Shown here: positions 19,101 to 34,206 of the stretch, piece by piece
How positions within the stretch are numbered: position 1 is the first letter of the stretch
Layout of the letters: every line of letters starts with the position of its first letter
Source: Klebsormidium nitens
Taxonomy: Eukaryota > Plantae > Klebsormidiophyceae
Direction of reading: 5' to 3'
NCBI GenBank assembly: GCA_000708835.1
Contig: DF237715.1
Location: forward strand, 1 to 34,813
Length of the DNA: 34,813 nucleotides
Program-made: the position numbers and the translations under genes
Notes under the pieces: model-generated
Seen by the model: the letters and a program-made list of their open reading frames with translations, nothing else
What the model was told of the DNA's origin: nothing
The model's database searches: none

Positions 19101-22100
19101 CGGAAGCTGAAGCCGCGGACGGCTTCACGGCCAAGAACGCGCCAGCGCTGAGGTTGCTCTACGCACTCCTATGCCCTCTCGACTCCACGCCGTCCGAGAA
19201 ACCGCCAGGGGGATACTATTCCTTCCTGCGCCGCTTCTCTGAGGGGCCGTCCACCGTCAAGGATCGCATCTTGATCCAAGACGTCGTCGCTTTCGCTCGC
19301 GAAGGGCTCGAGATCCCCGAAGGAGAACTGCTCCTCATGCCCCTGTTGATCGACGAGGGCAATATTGCCAAAGGGGTGTTTTTGAATGTGAGCTTCTTCT
19401 CTTGCTGTTTCGAAAAGCTCAACGGCTTCTCCTATTACCGTCGAGTTACCTGAGGAATAGAGCCTGTCGTTTCCAGAGGGACGTGCTTAAGACCCTTTGG
19501 TTTCTTGGCGCTTCCTTTCAAAGTGCAAGATGAGTTGCACAGTCTTCAAAACTTTCAGTCTGCGTTTGTCAAAGTGCTTGTTCCCTGGCTGCAGGTTTCC
19601 AGCGGCAAACTGCAGAGGTCTCCTATGCTCGACTTGACTGATAGGTTTCTTCATCGTACCTTGCAGGAGAATCCTCCCCAAACAGGAGACAACCCCACGT
19701 GGTTGAAGTGGTTTCTTAGTAAAATCACCCTCGCTAACAACGACGACACAAGCAATCTGAACCTGATCATCCCCATAACCGCAACAACGCGGTGGGATTC
19801 GACAAGTCTTCAGTGGACTGCAAGCGGGCAGGCTCAAGCCACTTATATCCCCCTCAAGCCCCTCTCCCTGACTGAGCGAAAAGAAGTGATTTGCGATCTA
19901 GCTACCCGTGTAGCAGCTCACAACGGTCGACCCGCACTCGATCACGAAGATCTGCCCCTTGCCCTGCGTAACGACGGCCTCGACATCGTTGGCGGCAATC
20001 CACGCCTTGTGTCGTGGCTGCTCGAGGGCATTGGGGGCCGGTCCTGGGCAACGGGTAAGCACCTTGAATCTGCACTCGCACAAAGAGCACAGACTTCGGA
20101 GAGTTCTTGCAAGTAAGGAAGAACGCCTGACACACTGATCTAAAAAAGAAATGTCGGCTGGATAGCTCCCCTCCATCACCAATTGTCGGGCTTCCTCCGA
20201 AAGTCACCCTAGTATCTGCAGGTCAGGTTCATTAACAAGGTGGAATTAAAGTCTCCGCGTAGCGAGGCTCGTATGCTTCCTCCTCAGTGGCCTTGACATT
20301 GTGGAGAATCAGTACCCGGTTGGGAGCTTTTCTTCTGAGATGTGCTAGGAGAATCGCATTCCCATTGTCACACAGCTCTGCCGATGGAGCTGCAGCCCAT
20401 CGTTGGTCCTGGTAATCACGATTCATTGTGATGGTTCTTCCACTTTTGTGCAGGCCTTGACGAAGCCGTCAAAGCCATCACGCCTTCGAACCTGGTGAAC
20501 ATTGTGAAGAAAGTGAAGCAGGCGGCGTATGAGCAATTGAAACTCAAAAGAATCATCGACCTCACAGCGTCGCCGGAGGTTAAGAAGAGCTGCCTGCAGG
20601 TTGTGGTCGCGACGATGATGCTGGATCTGCTGGTGAAGAGGAAAGAGAGATTGAAGGACCCGTTTTCGGGGCTGGACTTGCCCATCACCTGGGGGGAGCT
20701 CGAGGGCGACGGGGTTGTGGAACTTATCCCCCTGGTGAGCTCCTCAACCGCTAAAGCTGATCATGCACGGTTAATATCAGCAGCCTTTCGTACGGCCTTT
20801 GATGTAGGTCAGCATTTGTTGCTCCACTGGTCGCTTTATCGAGCACAGGGCGTGATGCTTCCAGCAGAGTTGTTCAAGGGACCGTGTTTCGAAAAGGTAA
20901 CGCTTCTGCAAGAGCAAGCAGTGCCTTCTGGCATGCGTTCTCAACATGTTCTTCAAGTTTTGCAATTGGGCAAACACTGAAGATGCGCAAGATTGTCAAC
21001 CCTTCCGTCTGTCGCTGCAGCTCAGAGTCGGGGTTTTGCAGCCAAGCCAAACCGCCTCAGGAGGCCCAAGCTCCACCAATCCCAACTCGGTGCAGAGGTT
21101 GCCCGAGGACCTTCCGTCAGCGACTCGAGCGACACCTGCTCCTCTCCTCATTCCCCTAAGCCAGCCATCGTCACACCAGCCCGTCACTCCCTCTGCTGCT
21201 CTGCCTGCGCAATCGGCCACCGCGCTTCCGATTCCTCCGAGCCCAACTTCCCTTTCTCCTTTAGAAGGAGCCGATGCCGCAGAACCTGTCGCAACTCCTT
21301 TGCCAGGACCGTCAGTGCGCAGCGGCTCTGCTTCGGGAGCGTCTTCTCCCCCCTTCAACCGCATGGGGAAAGGTGGGCGAGGAGAGGTCGTTGTTAGGGA
21401 TGAGGATTGGGGGGTGCTCGTTGAGACTGGAAGTGGGGACAACACCTCCCCAACCAAGCTGGGTATGCTGAACCGGGAGACGGCGTGCCCCCAGCCCACC
21501 AGCGAGCCGGGCGACGAATGGGTAAAGGTGTCTATGGGTTTTTTCATGTTCACCCTTCTGTTGGAGAGGATGGAACTGGTCCGAGAAAGCGACCTGAGCG
21601 CTTTCAGTGATGCCATGGTGCGCGAGAGCCCACTAGACAAGGAGAAGGCGGACGTGATGGCAGTGGCTTTGAAGTTACAAGCTCTCCATCTAATCGGACG
21701 GACTGAATTCTCCCTGAGCGAAGCCTTTCCAAACCTTCGGATACCCGCGGACCTTGCGGGCAAGCGCTTCTTGGTTCCCCCTGGCCCGCTTAGTGTGGGC
21801 GACGGGCTCCCCATGGGTCACCAGCTGACGAAACAGGCGTTTGCCACGACAGTGGCCGCGATAGCGGGCAAGATTCAGGAACGGATACGGGCAGGAAAGT
21901 GGGGCAAGGAGGCCCTCAGTATCGGGCTTGTCGGTCCCGGTAATGACGGTTGGGATGGGTTTGTGGTCTTGCTGGAAGCGAAACGAGACCCGAAGAGAGA
22001 CCCGTGGGTGCTCTTTTGTCAGAGCAAACAGGAATCGAGCCCCACAGAGGGCTATGTAACTTTGAAGGAGATCTTGCGCAATCTGGAGAGCGATATTCGG

Positions 22101-22793
22101 CAGACGCCGTACAGCCCGCCCACACTTCCAACCCAGTGGGTGCAGTGGCTGCGGAAGGAAACGGATGAGGCGCAGGAAGCGCATGCACCGGCGGCAGGTA
22201 GTGGAGATGAAAAAGCGACTGGGGCCAAGCTTGAAGAGGCGGGGAAAGCAGTCGGAATCGGCAAAACGAGGGCGGGAAAGAGGCCCAGGCCCGAGGAGGT
22301 CCAGGAGCGCGCCCTAGGTGCGATCTCGAAAAAGCGTGCGCTCGCCGGTACTGGGGAGACCGTCCCGGGTGGCGGTGAGCAGGCAGGGACAGGGCGGACT
22401 CGGTCGAAGGTATCAGCCGCCGGTGCCAAGGAGGAGCCGAAGGGGCGTAAGCGCAAGGAGCCGGAGAAGGCGGGAGAGGAGGAACTTCTTGTGGTCAGAA
22501 AGGTGCCAACAGGGAAGGAGAGCGAGCTCAGACCGGCGGACAGATTTCCGGATCAGGACTTCGGCTCCGATTGGACTTGCAATATGATCTACAGCTTTGT
22601 TTGCGATAGGCGATTTAGTCGTCGGCAATTGAACCTACTGAAGGAGGTTGAGCGTAGAGGGCATCCATGGTTGCAGAGGCTCCTGATAGTTTCCCGAGAG
22701 GACCAGGATAGTTGGTACAGTCGGATTGGAGCCCTACGTCGGTCGGCAACTTTGCACTGGCTGTCCGAGAAGATGGTTCTAAAGGACCGGTAA
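16163..22793 (+). CDS. Crinkler/RHS (CR)-type protein: ubiquitin-like header(s) + P-loop NTPase + PD-(D/E)xK restriction-endonuclease-like domain, about 1190 aa
   Basis: Exons 16163-16255, 17527-17749, 18150-18437, 18650-18854, 19075-19387, 19667-20054, 20454-20734, 21021-22793 are phase-compatible; MQLLVRTPEG (ubiquitin-like start), SCPGSGKTT, PALRLL, LLIDE, GGNPR, GNDGWDG...LFCQSK; 5' exon set uncertain. Confidence 0.75.
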
Positions 22794-25593: not shown

Positions 25594-26939
25594 TGTCAGT
25601 GTGCATTGAGGCGGAATCAACCGGCTGAGTCCCCTGCAATGGACTGAGCCCGAGAGGCTGTCTCTAAGAGCGATAGTCCCCGCCACCTCCATCATCCTGC
25701 AATCCGCTCTCCCAACCATTGCCACACACCCATCAGCCTGTTGCCAGGCTGCCACTCCCCTGGCCACCATGGCCGACCCCCAAACGCGGTGCACGAGACC
25801 GTTATCAGCTACCAAAAGTTAGGGCGCCCTAGATGCGCCCTTCAGGTCCGAAGAGTATATCAAGAAAATTACGGTCAAAACCACTTCAAGAGGCTCGTGG
25901 ACGTAGGTACTCAATACGGTAGGTACCTACCTATTCATTCCTAAAACCTAGCAGTGCCGGTATGCCGCTATGCGTACGCTGTTACGGTACCTAGGTAAGA
26001 AACGTACCTTCCGAGTACTGTGTATTGTATATGTAGTAGGTCTAGCCTCGTAGGAAGATGAGACCGCTCTCTCATGTGTGAGGGACTGTCCGAGACGACC
26101 GGTGCAAACATCAGCTTTCGTGACTACGAAGTGCGAGTTCAAGTTCGCGATCCAGAGATTTCCTGCAGTCAGGATTGTCGGGCATTCGTGAGAGCACGAT
26201 GTGCAAGCAAGGTCGCTGATAATGGTTGCACTGGAAAGTTGAAAGGAGGAAAGAGCAGCTCGGTTTTAACATTTTGCAAATGCTATCACCGTTGAACACA
26301 TTCCAAGGGATCACAATTCACATGTAGAAAGACAATGTGGGGTTGCACATAACTGGAAGAGGAAAATTGGGTCGTGCACGGCAAGCGTGTAATCTCGGCT
26401 GCGCAGTTGTGGAAGGTTTGCCACTTGAAAGCTCAGGTTGCAGAGCATGCGGCTGACATCCGGCGTTGAGAGGAGAGGTGCTGCAAAATGATGGTACGTG
26501 ATCTTGTCCCATGTCAACCAAATGAGCAAAGCGTTGTCTCTGACCAAGCTTTCTTGTTTACACAACTGTAGCTTGGATATAAGGACTTTCTGCCAGATGC
26601 TACACATACTGGCGATTGGCTTGTTGCATGGTGTAGCACCAGGCTGCCCGCGCACCTTTGCATGGACTGACCTAAGAAGGAGGTACTTGCTTGGCAGTCA
26701 AACGTGGGGCATCCCTCCAAGCAGCAGTTTTGAACCCACATCCTTACATTTAGTTGCAGCAGGTGTAACTTGTGTGCCCTTGTGCAATCTGCTGCTATAT
26801 TGATACTGAAGGGCACAGTAGAGGTGGCAGACTTGACATAGTTAGAGGCGTACGGCCCTGTACGGTTTTGCGTGAAAGGGGCGCAAGTCCTGAGGCTGGA
26901 TCTCAAGCAACTTGTGTAGAAATGTGCCATGCATGTCAG

Positions 26940-27420
26940 GAGACCGCTTGGTCACTCGTTGGCCCTGCCACCAGATCTGAAGTCTTGAATTTTCCCTATT
27001 TTCATAACGCATACCATGTGCTCCGCCGGAAGATAGAGCTCAGCGCAGGCCCTCTGGTGGCTGAGCGCTCACTAAAAAGGCGGCGGTGGCCTCTTGTTCA
27101 GTCATGGTTGGCAGGAACCCTAGGACCGACTGCTGAATTTTATGCATTTGCTGTCAATGATCCCTCCTGGAAGAAGGGACCAGGCAGGGACCAGGCCCTT
27201 GACTACTTTGACGCCAGTCATTTAGTGGAGGTTTCATGACCTTTCTTTCAAATCCAGTCCTTCTGACACCTATCTTTGCGAAAGGCAGGGTCTCAGGTTT
27301 GCAAATGTTGACCACTGTTGAGGCACTCAAGTGGTACATGTGGAGGGTGGTGTACTATCACCAGGAATGATCTGCTATTTTAATACATTGGACGGCACCC
27401 TCAAGACCTTTTTAAAACTT
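26940..27420 (+). pseudogene. Possible decayed Ulp1/C48-like peptidase fragment
   Basis: Exon-like ORF ending LDYFDASHLVE, then LLTPIF...WYMWRVV and, in another frame, ICYFNTLD, which loosely follows the Ulp1 PI...HW.L.V....I.YYDSL order; catalytic His not seen. Confidence 0.2.
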
Positions 27421-27924
27421 GGTGTTTTAGCCGAAGTTCAGCAGTCGTTGTATAGTTAGCATTGAAAGAGCCCGGCAAAATGTAAAGCACCGTGCTTAGT
27501 GCCGTATCAGAATTGTGGCCTGAGGGCTCACATCCTGCCGGAAAGGAAACAGACGGAGAAGTTACTGTGACATCGAACACGGCAGAGCGCGCGATGCTTT
27601 AGTATCCGGGCAGAATGGGTCGAAGTGATTGCCGTGGGCAACGTAGTCAAGAAAACCCTAGTTGTTGCCAGCTTCTTCTGTAGCAGAAAATCCACCCATT
27701 AAGAAGTCTTTTACAGATCTGGCTTGTGTGCACACCTAATGGAATTCTGGAAGATCATTGACACTTGTGCCTTCAGATGTTACTTGAACCTTGGGTTGAC
27801 ATAAGCCTTTCAAACGCTCCCATATGTCAGCCAGTATTGTGGTGCGCTATTCAATGCTGCAAAGCTTCTAAGCGGTGCAGCATCAAGGAGTCTGACCCTG
27901 GAGGCTTGCTTGTCTTGCGTGCAG

Positions 27925-30900
27925 GAGCCTACGCGCTTGACGCCCGAGGTGTTGGCCGCAGCGGCCGCCCGGGCGGACGAGGAGGACGCGTTGGACACCC
28001 CGCCCGCACCGCGTGCCCCGGCCAGCATGACGGAGGAGCTGCCGCCCCTGCCCCGCGTCTCCTCCCCCCGCCTCGGTTCCAACTCACCCAGAGCAGCGCC
28101 AGCGCGCAAGAGTAACTGTGAGGGGCCGCACCGTATGCCTTACTTTGTGGACCCACTGCCCTGACATTCCTGAGCCAGGTGGCTCTCGTCTTCCGCCTTG
28201 GCTCGCCATGACCACCATGTGTTTCTGCTGCTGGGAGGTGTGCTGAGTACTGGTTTGCCTGTCTTGGCCTCGTTGTACAGATGGCAGCATACAGCCCCTC
28301 AACACACCGGAGTACGGTCGCCGCGATGACAGCGACCTGGAGGGGTCGGAAGCAGAGGGTCCAGAGGGTGGGGGAGGGTCCACCGTTTCAGAAGAGTTTA
28401 CAAGGTGAACGAGCCAAGACAGAGAAAGGCACGACTTCAGAAAGCTTTCGTTTGGGCGCATCTGGCTGAATGCCAGCCCAAAAGAGGGATTCCTTCTGTG
28501 AAGAGCTCTCTTCCAACTGTATTGGTGTCTGAGGAGCGGGAATCAGGCCAGAGTGTCGGCTTAGCCCCATTGGGGCGTGTACGATGCGACCAGCTTTTGA
28601 GATGGTTCGTCCTTTTTCGCTGCAGCTACGACCGTGCGCGCCTTCAGCTATACCGCAAGGTCCCTGTCAAAGCCGGCCTCATCAACCCCTACAGGTGATC
28701 GACTGCTCTCTCCGGTATGTCCACTCGTTGCGCTGCTCGCGCTGCTTCACTGTTACGCTCAGCTGCGGGCAAGGTATCCTGGCGGTATTGTTGCCTATGC
28801 TTGGCGGCGTTCTCACGATCGGGGTGGCCCTGTGCGCAGGTTCCTGGTGTTCCTGCGGCTGCTGGTCATGCTAGGCTTCTTCTTCTGGCGCATCACCAAC
28901 CCCAACAACAAGGCGTTTGGCCTCTGGATGACAGCCGTCATCTGTGAAATCTGGATCGGCCTTGCCTGGCTCATTGACCAGGGCCCCCGCCTCGGGCCCG
29001 TCAACCGTGAAACGTTCATGGATCGTCTTATGCAAAAGTGAGTGCTCTCAAAAACCCGCATCATTGGGGTTGCTTGGACCAGCTACTCAGAATGGCGGCC
29101 CTCCACTTTGATTCTCACTTTGCTGGTAGCCCTGCAGATGTTGCCTGGCCGGCCCTGTTCTCTAGACGTTGGCAACTCAAGAATTTACTGAAGGAGTTGT
29201 TACACTGGTACGAGCGCCCGGGGGACGGGTATGGTCGATCTGGAGACCATGGTTGTTAGGAGTGCGGAGCAGATTACATTCTGGAGTGGACTTCTCATTT
29301 GAGGTATCAGGGCTACTTAACCTCAGTGTGACATGTACACCGGCAATGTCTCTCCTGCCCCGCACTGAGCGCTGTGGTGATGATGCGCAGGTACGATCGT
29401 GAGAACGAGGACAGCAAGTTGCGCGCGGTTGACTTCTTCATCCACTCCTCCGACCCCGAGAACGACTCGCCGATCCTCACCTGCAATGCTGCTCTCTCTG
29501 TGTTGGCGCTCGATTATCCTGTCGAAAAGTGAGCACTCCCCGCAGCAGGCTCCCTGTGGCAGCCCTCCCAGGTGCTGGCGACAGTTTTCAATCCTGCCGT
29601 TCTTCTGTGGTACATGGGTGTGTTTCCGGACCAGGATTTTTAAAAAAGTATTTTACGTCACCCTGAGATAGCGCTGCTCTCGCTGCGTGCAGGGTGTCGT
29701 GCTACGTGAACGACGAGGGCGCGTCCATGCTGACGTTCCAGGTGCTGACGGAGACGGCCAGCTTTGCCCGCGACTGGGTGCCCTTCTGCAAGAAGTTCGA
29801 CATTGAGCCACGTGCGCCTGAGAACTACTTCGCGATCAAGGTGGACTACACCAAGGACAAGAAGCACCCCGACTTCGTCAAGGAGCGCCGCGCCATGAAG
29901 GTCAGCCACCCCGCACCACCCAACCCTGCCTCAATTGCGCCGTGTCGAAGCCGTATCTTTCGTCTGAAGCCCTGGACGCAAAGAGAGCGGCAGTCAAGGT
30001 GCTGCCTTTCGGCTCGTTTGCCGGCCTGTGCTGAGGTGCGTGTGCGGTGCTGTGCGTGCAGCACCACTACGAGGAGTTCAAGGTGCGCATCAACGCGCTG
30101 GTGGCCAAGTGCGCCAAGCAGAGGCCGCTGGAGGGCTGGCGAGTGGCGGACGGCACCCCGTGGCCGGGCAACAACCCGCAGGACCACCCCGGCATGATCC
30201 AGATCCTGCTGCAGCCCAACGTCAACGCGCTCGACAACGAGAACAACCTGCTCCCGCGCCTTGTGAGCACCACGCCCTCACGTATCTGTCCTGTTCTGCA
30301 ACGGCTAAGCGGGGCGGGGCCTTTCAGCGCGGCTTCCCCGGGTGCTTGCAGGGACGTACTTCTGACAGACGCTCAGCCCACCGTGGGCAAAGATTCCGCT
30401 GGGGCTGACTTTCTTGCGGTGCGCGCCCTGCCACAGGTATATCTCTCGCGCGAGAAGCGGCCAGGGTACGACACACACCGCAAGGCGGGCGCTATGAACG
30501 CGCTGCTGCGTGCGAGTGCCCTGATCACCAACGCGCCCTACATCTGCTTCATGGACTGCGATACCTACGTCAACAACGCCAATGGGGTCAAGGAGGTGCG
30601 CCACCATTACATGTGTAGCCGCTGCCACCGCCACTGTGCCTGCAGGCCCGCTTCTTGGGGTTAACAGAGCCCGCTGTCCGTCCCCGGTTCCTGCTCGTTT
30701 TAGGCGCCTGTTTGGGACTTGAGAATGCTGTCGTGGTGGCGTTTCTGATGCACTGTGCGGGGTGGTGTGCAGGCGATGTGCTTCTTCGAGGACCCGCAGA
30801 AGGGCGGCAAGGTGTCGTACGTGCAGTTCCCGCTGCGCTACGACGGCGTGGACCCGCACGACCGTTACAACAACCACAACACCGCCTTCTATGACATCTA

Positions 30901-32993
30901 CCTCAAGGGCCTCGATGGCATCCAGGGGCCCATCTTTCTTGGCAACGGCACCGTCTTCCGTAGAGGGGTGAGCGCCCTGTGCCGCGCTGCCCTCATGTAC
31001 TCACACGTAAAATCTTGATGCAGCAACAGTCGCTGGCCAGCCTCCCGTACAGTAAATGTCGGGTGCTGCGTGCCTGCCTGGGCTGACCCACCGCTGTGTT
31101 GCTGTGTGCGCAGTCTTTGTATGGCGCGCTCCCCCCCCAGCTGGACAAGCGCGCCAAGCCGAAGCGCGGTTGCCTGGGGCTGTGCTGCTCCTGCTTCGGC
31201 TGCTGCGGCCCTGCGCGGCCCAACAAGACGAGCGAGATGGACCTCGAGGAGCAGGACCAAGGTCAGCATGCAGCATGCAGCGCTCTGTGCCGCATGGATT
31301 GGCCCGGAACCCTGTCTGAAGTGCTGACACCGGAAACACGGCGTGCGAGCCTTCTCGTATGTTGTGGTGCAGCCGTAGCACCTGCCGAACTCCGCTGCCC
31401 TTCTCCTCACCGCTGATGCTGTGTTGCTGGAGCTGGAAGATGAAGCGCAGCTGGTGGGCGGGGTGGACGTGCTGCTTTGGCAAGAACTGACGCGGCGGGG
31501 CGGGCTCGTGTGTGCAGAGGAGCTGCAGCTGATGCCCTTCAAGTGGCACACGGCGCGCTACGGAACGTGCGAGAACTTCGTGTCGTCCACGTTCGAGACG
31601 GCGGGCGGCGCGCCCGTGAACAGCCCGCGCACGACGCTGAGCGACGTGATCCTCGTCATCTCGTGCGGGTACGAGGAGAACACGCAGTGGGGCAAGGAGA
31701 TCGGGTGGATCTACTGCAGCAGCGCGGAGCACGTGGTGACGGGCCAGAAGGTCCACGCGCGCGGCTGGCGCTCCATCTACTGCCTGCCCAAGCGGCCCGC
31801 CTTCCGGCGCCCCGCGCAGATCAACCTGGCGGACCGCCTGCACGCGGTGCTCACCGAGGCGCTGGGCGCGGTGGAGACGTACTGGAGCAAGTACAACGTG
31901 CTGTGGTGGCGCCCGTGCAGCAGCCAGCTGAAGCGGCGGCAGCGCCTCGCGTACCTCAACGCGGCGGCGTACCCCATGGTGGCCATCCCCGTCAGCGCCT
32001 ACTGCGTGCTGCCCGCCATCTGCCTCATCACCAACCAGTTCATCGTGGGCCACGTGACCAACATCGGCGCGGGCATCTTCGTCGCCTACGCGCTCGTGTA
32101 CGGCCTCAGCTGCTGGTTCGAGATGCGCTGGTCCGCGGTGCCGCTCGAGGAGTGGTGGCGCGCGCAGCAGATGTGGGTCATCAACTGCACCAGCGGCTAC
32201 CTCGCCGCCGTCGGCCAGGGCTCCCTCCGCGTCTTCGCCGGCTGCGAGGGCGCGCTCAAGGCCGCCCCGCACGAGCACGAGGGCCACTACGACTACGCCG
32301 AGCTCTACACCTTCCGGGTGAGAACAGGGGTCGGGACGCACGCGGCTTCAAAGTGCTTTCTTCAGTTAGCATTCAGGGAACGGCAGCTGCCCGCGATTGC
32401 ACCGCCAGCTGGACGCTTGGGTGCTGACCCGCCCGCGTGTGCTGCTTGCAGTGGACGTGGCTGCTCATCACCCCGCTGACGGTGATCCTCATTAACTGCT
32501 TTGGCGTTGTGGCCGGCCTGGCCAAAGCCGTCAACAACAAGAATCCGGAGTGGGGTAAGGCAGGCGGCCGCTTCTGCATCACTGTCCAGTCACCATGGAG
32601 TGGCTGTCTTGCAAAATGGTCTGTACGCTCAGGATCCCGCTCCTCCTTGAAGCTCACCAGCCAAACTGCCACAGCCTTGGGACTGTTGCAAGTCTCATTT
32701 GTGGGTTCATACAAGGGTTGTCGTTAGATGCAATCGACGCCACAAAGCTTTTTGAATATTGTCATGGAGCTCTGCCGGTCTCTCAATGCTTGTACTTATG
32801 CTGACTCCGTGGCTTGCTGCTCGCAGGTCAACTCGCTGTCCGGCTTGTGTATGCCATAGTTGTCCTCACCTTCATGTACCCCTTCGCCAAGGGGCTCATG
32901 GGCCGCCACCGACGGGTACCCACCATTGTCATCGTGTGGTGCCTCATGCTGGCCATCATCTTTTCTCTCCTCTGGGTTCAAGTTCTCTTCTAG
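27925..32993 (+). CDS. CESA: Plant-type cellulose synthase (CESA)-like GT2 protein with substituted catalytic motifs; 13 exons, 889 codons before the stop
   Basis: Exons 27925-28111, 28281-28377, 28626-28694, 28840-29037, 29391-29528, 29693-29900, 30062-30262, 30437-30595, 30773-30967, 31114-31261, 31518-32317, 32452-32554, 32827-32993 join in phase; [80 protein letters not shown]. Confidence 0.93.
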
Positions 32994-34206
32994 GTCTGAG
33001 GCAGCATGCACGGCAAACTTTGCAGTGCAGGGTGAAGGTGCGTGTATCCATCTCATAGTGTATACTGAGTCAAAGCGTGAATCTTCAATACTCATGACGG
33101 AAGAGACTGACATAGAGCACTTCGATAGGTACGTTCGTAGGTTTTCTAGGGTGAAAAGAGGTTGAAAACGGAGGCCGCATAAATCCAAGTGTCAGTGGGA
33201 AACTCATAACATTAGAATTTTGACCCATGCAACGCATTGCTTTCAAGTGGGTTGATCTGGCTAAAGGAAAGTGGTTGTTGAATGCTTGACCTTTTGTGAG
33301 CCTTGCTGCCGAGTTCCGGCGGTTTTGCAATAGACGCCTCCGTCGAACGCCCTCATGTGAAGTCCTTGTGGGACTCATGGTGGCTACTGCAATGGTGCAA
33401 CGATCCAGGCCGGCCTACCTGATGCAATGATGCGGACATTACCCAGACTCTACCAGAAAAGCTTTGAACCCACATCGACTCCAGTCTCAAAATATATTTG
33501 TTAACCGTCGATATTGTGTCTGCGCGCATTTGTATAAAACTTCAACCGCTGAGAATTGTTCTCGTATTCGACGGTGAAAAGTTTCGACGTTGAAGATTGC
33601 ATTCACGATTTTGGACAGGATTATGTTTGATGAACGGCAAAAATCAACGCCTGACGCGAAGTTACTTGAGTGGTCGTCACTCTGCGAGCTAGCGCTGCAA
33701 CAGACGTACTTGTGCAGTACGTTATCATGCAAAGATAAGTGGCGCGCCGTACAGTCCGGTCGCTGTGCGCGATGAATAGTTCGATCTGGTCTATACGGTA
33801 GGCTTCATATATATATAATGTTGCCAGCGATCGATCCAACTAGCTAGCTTGGGCGGCTTGGTGTCACGTACGGTCGAATAGTTTCTCCTTATTCCGCGGG
33901 CAATTGGCGTACGCAGACGGCTGCAGTCGTTTCATTGAGTCAAGTTCGAAGTTGTTGAACTTTCCGTCAGACTCACCTTTGCACCGACTGGCCTAGTGGA
34001 CGTAATAGGTACTTATACGAAGGTATCGCACCTATAATCTTTTAATTATATAAACCGCATATACCGACAGTACGGTATTGAAGGATATCCTTGATATTAC
34101 ATTTGACTACAATCTGGCCTCGTTAGCAACGTTATATTCAAAGGCCATGCATTGCCAACGCTTATGTAATGGAACATGATGGGAAAGGGCCACCCTAAAC
34201 TTTAGT

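Follow-up and report, generated by a model that had tools for sequence, protein, structure and literature searches.

Can a cellulose synthase (CESA) family member be retained as a working gene once its catalytic motifs have been replaced? This question is raised by a locus on contig DF237715.1 of the alga Klebsormidium nitens (GenBank assembly GCA_000708835.1), of which we analyzed positions 1 to 34,813 of the forward strand (34,813 nucleotides, hereafter the window). An earlier reading of this DNA (hereafter the original prediction) had described a CESA pseudoenzyme whose catalytic TED and QxxRW motifs are replaced in an otherwise intact gene of 13 exons, the product being either a dead subunit kept as a scaffold, regulator or channel, or an enzyme with changed chemistry. 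Our analysis indicates that a catalytically dead family member maintained by selection is well supported by substitution rates, expression and conserved substitutions. We also consider it probable, judging from the residues and their conservation, that the gene encodes a functional pseudoenzyme, paralogous to beta-glucan synthases of the charophyte CesA/CslD-like type, which would act as a non-catalytic membrane subunit or regulator together with RING-bearing active paralogues.

Translation of window positions 31601-32000 (+ strand) gave AEH where cellulose synthases read TED and AVLTE where they read QVLRW (Table 1). Both replacements were borne out by phmmer alignments with PDB sequences, in which AEH lies under TED and AVLTE under QVLRW in five solved plant CESA structures (E-values of 1e-68 to 1e-75). 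In the numbering of poplar CESA8 (6WLB, allowing for a 13-residue construct offset), the H of AEH aligns with Asp676 and the last E of AVLTE with Trp718; Asp676 has been called the catalytic base, and Trp718 stacks on the acceptor glucose (preprint 10.64898/2026.07.20.739232). The translation likewise agreed with the original prediction in reading the DDG motif as NDEG, with the first D kept and the second changed to E, and in reading QFPLRY where active relatives have QFPQRF. A further loss, missed in the original prediction, affects the FxVTxK gating loop, where the gene reads GALKAAP. The signature of competent processive GT2 synthases (D, DxD, (T)ED, QxxRW) is therefore present only in part (DEG, DCD kept, AEH, AVLTE), and their gating loop is absent. 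As predicted, DCD, KAG, the plant-conserved region (P-CR), the Cys cluster and the C-terminal helices, with all membrane segments, are retained in a reading frame without stop or frameshift. The first D of DDG is retained as well. Membership of the CESA/CSL superfamily is evident from matches to PF03552 (GT2) in exons 7, 8 and 9, 10, and 12 (Table 1).

To place these replacements in context, we searched 1.84 billion cluster representatives with phmmer. The matches comprised canonical CESA and CSLD proteins at no more than 49% identity and three short fragments at 80-92% identity, which read CSSTEH, HEVLTESLG and GALKAAP. The fragments trace to a contig of a JGI metagenome on which the gene is complete (L003) and to a contig from a Logan assembly (L001). 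A word search added a protein (P0295) on a further Logan contig (L009), with 98% identity in exon 12 and the readings AEH, AVLTE and GALKAAP. The TED site thus reads TEH in L003 and L001 and AEH in L009, so that the E is kept and the D is changed to H in all four taxa, and the QVLRW site reads EVLTE in L003 and L001 and AVLTE in L009. GALKAAP stands at the aligned position in all sequences of this dead lineage and is identical in the L003 protein (P0017) and in P0295. The orthologues in the three algal contigs are intact: every splice site and the stop position are conserved in L003, whose flanks are no longer alignable, and the splice sites and stop are conserved over the covered part of L009. 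Neither the 1.84 billion representatives nor the word search yielded dead-lineage members with less than approximately 80% identity, although 50% clusters represented by active proteins could hide full-length ones. A search of the metagenome_contigs collection with exon 12 gave no match, and that collection evidently lacks the L003 samples.

An alignment of 22 active relatives, ranging from Mesostigma to angiosperms, contains 186 invariant columns. Of these, 34 are altered in both the window gene and L003, 33 of them to the same residue; the motif changes are therefore not due to chance. Among those altered are D>E in DDG, H>T following DCD, Q>L in QFPQRF and T>N in VGTGC, together with D>H in TED itself and G>C before it. 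All of Q, R and W in QxxRW have changed, as have F, T and K in the gating loop, and NEQFWVIGGxSAH shows E>Q, F>M, G>C and H>Y. Every hallmark catalytic residue falls among the columns altered in the two genes.

We then estimated the ratio of nonsynonymous to synonymous divergence (dN/dS) by Nei-Gojobori counts, exon by exon, with split codons dropped and bootstrap 95% confidence intervals (CI), as the original prediction had proposed. The window gene and L003 differ over 888 codons with dS 0.68, dN 0.069 and dN/dS 0.102 (CI 0.077-0.128), and the window gene and L009 over 581 codons with dS 0.186, dN 0.008 and dN/dS 0.043 (CI 0.019-0.075); neither comparison resembles neutral evolution. Since the introns of the window gene and L009 differ by 0.35 per site (Jukes-Cantor) and the 3' untranslated regions (UTR) by 0.18 (uncorrected) while the orthologues stay intact, a decaying pseudogene is excluded, and a young pseudogene was ruled out on the same substitution rates and intact orthologues. 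Strong purifying selection predates the divergence of the sampled Klebsormidium-like taxa, and the motif replacements are fixed in all four. Against L003, the lowest exon values of dN/dS were found in the P-CR exons 7 and 8 (0.035 and 0.056, with 99% and 96% amino acid identity) and in the last two exons, 13 and 14 (0.022 and 0.055), compared with 0.27 and 0.21 in exons 10 and 12 of the former catalytic core. Exon 7 is 72-77% identical to land-plant CESA, equal to the active K. nitens paralogue, and exon 12 is down to 45-51% identity versus 58-65% among active proteins.

Expression was analyzed in Logan contigs from four runs of four studies, compared with window positions 27600-33500. In all four runs the contigs skip 12 introns, all GT..AG, with zero base differences in the exons; depth within introns is near zero, and one contig ends in a poly(A) stretch (Table 1). 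The runs therefore hold complementary DNA, and the gene is transcribed, spliced and polyadenylated. Contigs and genome agree throughout the exons, which rules out an assembly error, or RNA editing, as the source of the motif changes. The contigs also carry 5' sequence joined at 27924 in the four runs, the last 30 bases of which match window positions 26463-26492 exactly and are followed by a G and a GT donor. The 13 exons originally counted are thus confirmed as the coding exons within 27925-32993, but one more 5' exon, ending at 26493 and bearing the start, brings the gene model to 14 exons and approximately 902 amino acids. Being expressed and under purifying selection despite its lost catalytic residues, the gene has the properties that define a pseudoenzyme. 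Two findings that would have spoken against the original prediction, lack of expression and a neutral dN/dS, were thus both contradicted.

The N-terminal RING zinc finger (zf-UDP, PF14569) is also absent, which the original prediction had not reported. Exons 2 and 3 contain no cysteines and match no Pfam family, and tblastn with the N-termini of three RING-bearing relatives found nothing RING-like across the 34.8-kb window. The in-frame reading at the start is TGA ... AAA ATG ATG / GAG (the slash marks the end of exon 1), with the stop preceding the start; this fixes the start and leaves no room for a RING on a coding exon further upstream.

To determine where the gene belongs in the family, we built a maximum-likelihood tree from full-length sequences (28 rows, 795 columns), in which the exon peptides were entered as one row with an X at each junction. 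The dead clade (support 100/100) lies inside a 19-row charophyte CesA/CslD-like clade (100/99), which contains Chara, Closterium, Klebsormidium, Chlorokybus and Mesostigma sequences together with CSLD, and outside land-plant CESA. K. nitens has an active RING-bearing paralogue in this clade (P0180, 1126 amino acids, on scaffold DF237408.1, L008), and an active paralogue of an environmental relative (L005, L007) has RING, TED, QVLRW and FTLTQK intact. The stem branch of the dead clade measures 0.94 versus 0.36 for P0180. By the approximately unbiased (AU) test, a single Klebsormidium clade of the dead and two active genes was not rejected (p = 0.24); grouping or orthology with land-plant CESA was tried and rejected (p = 0.0003). 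Of the features of land-plant CESA in the strict sense, the gene has the P-CR (63-77% identity) and the Cys-rich class-specific region, and lacks both the RING and the clade placement. This placement agrees with a report that K. nitens has no land-plant CESA orthologue but does have a charophyte-specific CesA clade (Fitzek 2019, PMC6566377). The label CESA is accordingly imprecise for a RING-less member of the charophyte CesA/CslD-like clade.

A dN/dS benchmark on the active genes P0180/L008 and L007 was dropped, as their 70% identity and dS of 1.1 mark them as paralogues of each other. By comparison, the orthologues of the dead gene are 91% identical. This makes it likely that algae of the Klebsormidium type possess, besides the dead gene, two or more different active CesA/CslD-like genes. 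It should also be noted that the CESA-family protein P0032 of Closterium sp. NIES-65 (CAI5977517.1, 1181 amino acids) has HSNAHPLLTG for GSVTEDILTG, QVLLS for QVLRW and no FxVTxK, whereas its zf-UDP RING is retained; its branch in the tree is very long (2.78). This protein could represent another dead paralogue of independent origin or stem from a mis-predicted gene.

What, then, could such a protein do? With the catalytic base replaced (TED to A/T-E-H), the R and W of QxxRW, which bind acceptor and diphosphate, turned into T-E, and the FxVTxK gating loop and N-terminal RING lost, glucan polymerization would be impossible for the protein. Binding of uridine diphosphate (UDP) or UDP-glucose may persist, as the nucleotide-side motifs are retained (first D of DDG, DCD, KAG). 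Its probable contact surfaces are the P-CR and the last helix, which correspond to CESA trimer surfaces and are its most constrained parts. Since the contacts reported for CESA trimers involve transmembrane regions TM4 and TM7 besides the P-CR (PMC13016765; PMC10291031), this pattern of constraint favors a non-catalytic complex subunit or regulator. In addition, AtCESA6 proteins with single-residue mutations in TED or QxxRW reach the plasma membrane in complexes and move slower, which the authors read as reduced synthesis (PMC10291031), making a defective subunit within a complex plausible.

Several points weigh against this proposed reading. The loss of activity is deduced from residues, and the putative pairing with active paralogues from the conservation pattern, which alone favors an assembly role. 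A histidine could in principle serve as general base, and the retained nucleotide-side motifs would also fit a changed enzyme. Contig depth, furthermore, is unfit for ranking expression. The RING domain serves dimerization in land-plant CESAs. Taking its absence together with the finding that the QxxRW mutations Q823E and R826A of AtCESA6 lowered complex formation (PMC10291031), complex assembly of the algal protein is not guaranteed.

We regard it as quite unlikely that the gene encodes an enzyme with changed chemistry, in which the Glu-His pair and the retained nucleotide half would support non-processive transfer, hydrolysis, or the use of another acceptor. Such an enzyme would fit the motifs that remain (DCD, KAG and, in DDG, the first D), the uniform change of TED to an E-H pair in the four taxa, and the constraint still acting on the former catalytic-core exons (dN/dS 0.21-0.27), but it would have to work without R and W in QxxRW, without the second Q in QFPQRF and with no FxVTxK gating loop at all, with further site residues altered (G>C before TED; E>Q, F>M and G>C in NEQFWVIGG), a combination found in no active member among 150 representatives.

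There is likewise only a small chance that the product is a stand-alone membrane protein with a new role outside the synthase complex, unpaired with active paralogues, such as a channel or a sensor of glycans or UDP-sugars. The lost RING, the long stem branch (0.94 versus 0.36 for the active K. nitens paralogue) and the retention of all membrane segments under constraint agree with such a role. It is opposed by the finding that the regions reported as trimer contacts of CESA (PMC13016765; PMC10291031), namely the P-CR and the last helix, are under the strongest constraint, and by the retention of the Cys cluster, which is used in CESA trafficking. A transcribed pseudogene heading to decay, or an assembly or annotation artefact, is extremely improbable: the loss of the catalytic motifs and RING and the low-depth contigs retaining intron 12 would suit it, but the frames are intact, the four taxa share the splice sites and the stop, dN/dS is 0.04-0.10 with CIs far below 1 while introns diverge by 0.35 per site, and the contigs equal the genome at each exon base.

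If the protein is indeed a non-catalytic partner of active synthases, it might be obligatory, in stoichiometric amounts, for a heteromeric terminal complex of Klebsormidium, where it would fill positions but produce no chain and thereby set the number of glucan chains extruded per complex; we put this forward tentatively, as a rather doubtful extension. Cellulose is a minor wall component in this alga, and a regulator of chain number, if that is what the protein is, could help explain this minor share.

Table 1. Features of the CESA-like gene in the window (positions from the first nucleotide of the window).
Feature	Position	Strand	Content and evidence
Exon 1, 3' end	26463..26493	+	Start ATG ATG at 26488-26493 after in-frame TGA; donor GT at 26494; context ...AAAATGATG, then GTACGTG
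Exon 2	27925..28117	+	N-terminal cytosolic region, no cysteine or RING; joint 28117>28281, GT..AG in 4 runs; no Pfam family
Exon 3	28281..28404	+	Acidic N-terminal region; transcript joints, translation
Exon 4	28626..28694	+	Segment preceding first transmembrane helix; 100% identical in L003
Exon 5	28840..29037	+	Transmembrane helices 1-2; transcripts, translation, alignment
Exon 6	29391..29528	+	Start of GT2 domain; FIHSSDPE versus FVSTADPE in actives
Exon 7	29693..29900	+	NDEG at 29709-29720 and first half of P-CR; PF03552, 3e-32; 99% amino acid identity to L003
Exon 8	30062..30262	+	Second half of P-CR (...DGTPWPGNN...DHPGMIQ); PF03552, 2e-43 with exon 9; translation, alignment
Exon 9	30437..30595	+	HRKAGAMNA; DxD kept as DCD at 30554-30562, then T instead of H
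Exon 10	30773..30967	+	QFPLRY at 30824-30841 (actives QFPQRF); LGNGTVF (actives VGTGCVF); PF03552, 5e-28
Exon 11	31114..31261	+	Equivalent of class-specific region; Cys cluster at 31177-31206
Exon 12	31518..32317	+	Former catalytic core and transmembrane helices; PF03552, 3e-80; PDB alignments, transcript joints
AEH for TED	31724..31732	+	PDB alignment; translation
AVLTE for QVLRW	31844..31858	+	PDB alignment; translation
GALKAAP for FxVTxK gating loop	32249..32269	+	Alignment
Exon 13	32452..32554	+	Transmembrane helix; transcripts, translation
Exon 14	32827..32993	+	Last transmembrane helix and stop codon; stop position same in L003 and L009
3' UTR to poly(A) site	32994..33270	+	Contig of run X1 ending at 33270, then 25 A

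Regarding the structure of the gene, intron 1 (26494-27924) measures 1431 nt, compared with 134-353 nt for the other twelve introns. Exon 12 is a single exon of 800 nt in the window and in L009, and is split by two extra introns in L003 (8671-10276) and L001 (2064-3680), located after approximately amino acids 96 and 177. The active paralogue L005 is likewise interrupted by an intron behind the corresponding RPAFK, and at least this intron was probably lost in the lineage of K. nitens. Contigs retaining intron 12 (window 32527-32855) have a depth of 7-9 versus 100-400, and the one from run X1 has C>T at intronic position 32738. In all four runs, contigs of another transcript match only the short GC-rich window stretches 31445-31465 and 31593-31614 and then continue into unrelated sequence (TCGGTGGAGGAGCTGTGCC...). 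There is also a spurious joint 31614>31445 with GGGGGCGGCG between its sides; this looks like a short common GC-rich motif and not like splicing of the CESA-like gene. Upstream, an uninterrupted open reading frame (ORF) of 615 amino acids with a Pro/Ser/Ala-rich N-terminus lies at 20946-22793 (+); a search for its exact product found no such gene on record in the assembly collection.

The existence of natural non-catalytic subunits in cellulose synthase complexes is an unsettled issue, with consequences for what determines the number of chains and the structure of microfibrils. Genes of the grass CESA10/11 type gave a hint of such subunits, but they are reported to be poorly expressed and have been ignored. 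The algal case is an independently evolved gene, RING-less, motif-less, transcribed and selected, in an early-diverging streptophyte alga that is culturable and has a sequenced genome, which makes Klebsormidium a tractable system for the role of a dead CESA. In the literature, we found no report of a dead CESA in Klebsormidium or of a CESA pseudoenzyme. Where surveys require a RING domain and the catalytic motifs (e.g., PMC13016765), such genes would be lost and the family under-counted.

Compared with known systems, the window gene has PF03552, the P-CR, the Cys-rich cluster and the last helix in common with land-plant CESA (6WLB, 7D5K, 8VHT, 8VHZ, 8VI0), but it belongs to another clade, lacks the RING and has its catalytic motifs replaced. 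Non-catalytic glycosyltransferase partners do occur in plant wall synthesis, such as IRX9 in the xylan synthase complex and GAUT7, which anchors GAUT1. The likeness lies in a paralogue without catalytic residues that is nevertheless needed as a structural partner, and it is an analogy only, with no homology, as IRX9 and GAUT7 are Golgi type II proteins of the GT43 and GT8 families.

Another close system is the charophyte 'CGA CesA'/CslD-like clade (K. nitens P0180, Chara P0002, Closterium P0001; Yin 2014, PMC4023592; Fitzek 2019, PMC6566377), with which the gene shares its exon-level architecture, the P-CR and a short C-terminus just past the last helix. Its identity to P0180 is 58% over 670 amino acids. 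The active members of this clade have RING, DDG, DCD, TED, QVLRW and FTLT(S/Q)K intact, whereas the window gene lacks the RING, TED, QxxRW and the gating loop.

Finally, the grass CESA10/11-type genes (OsCESA11, BdCESA10, sorghum Sb10g023430) resemble the algal gene in lacking the RING, the catalytic D and QxxRW while keeping the DxD and the cellulose-synthase domain. Grass genes without RING and without the D/QxxRW signature have been described and left unexplained (PMC3847494, PMC3022907), and our own alignment confirmed that OsCESA11 (P0034, P0161) has neither TED nor QxxRW. The two are of independent origin. It was within the charophyte CesA/CslD-like clade that the algal gene arose; the cluster of rice CESA11 (P0034, P0161, P0028) has a branch of its own in the tree and is not orthologous to the algal gene. 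They also differ in expression, OsCESA11 being reported as an exception to high expression in rice, whereas the algal gene was assembled in all four runs. Given the common features and the separate branch, the algal gene is an independent instance of the same kind, that is, a new member and not a new category. If the protein does set chain number, as tentatively suggested above, the combined loss of RING, TED and QxxRW would have arisen independently in grasses, which would point to a recurrent class of non-catalytic CESA subunits.

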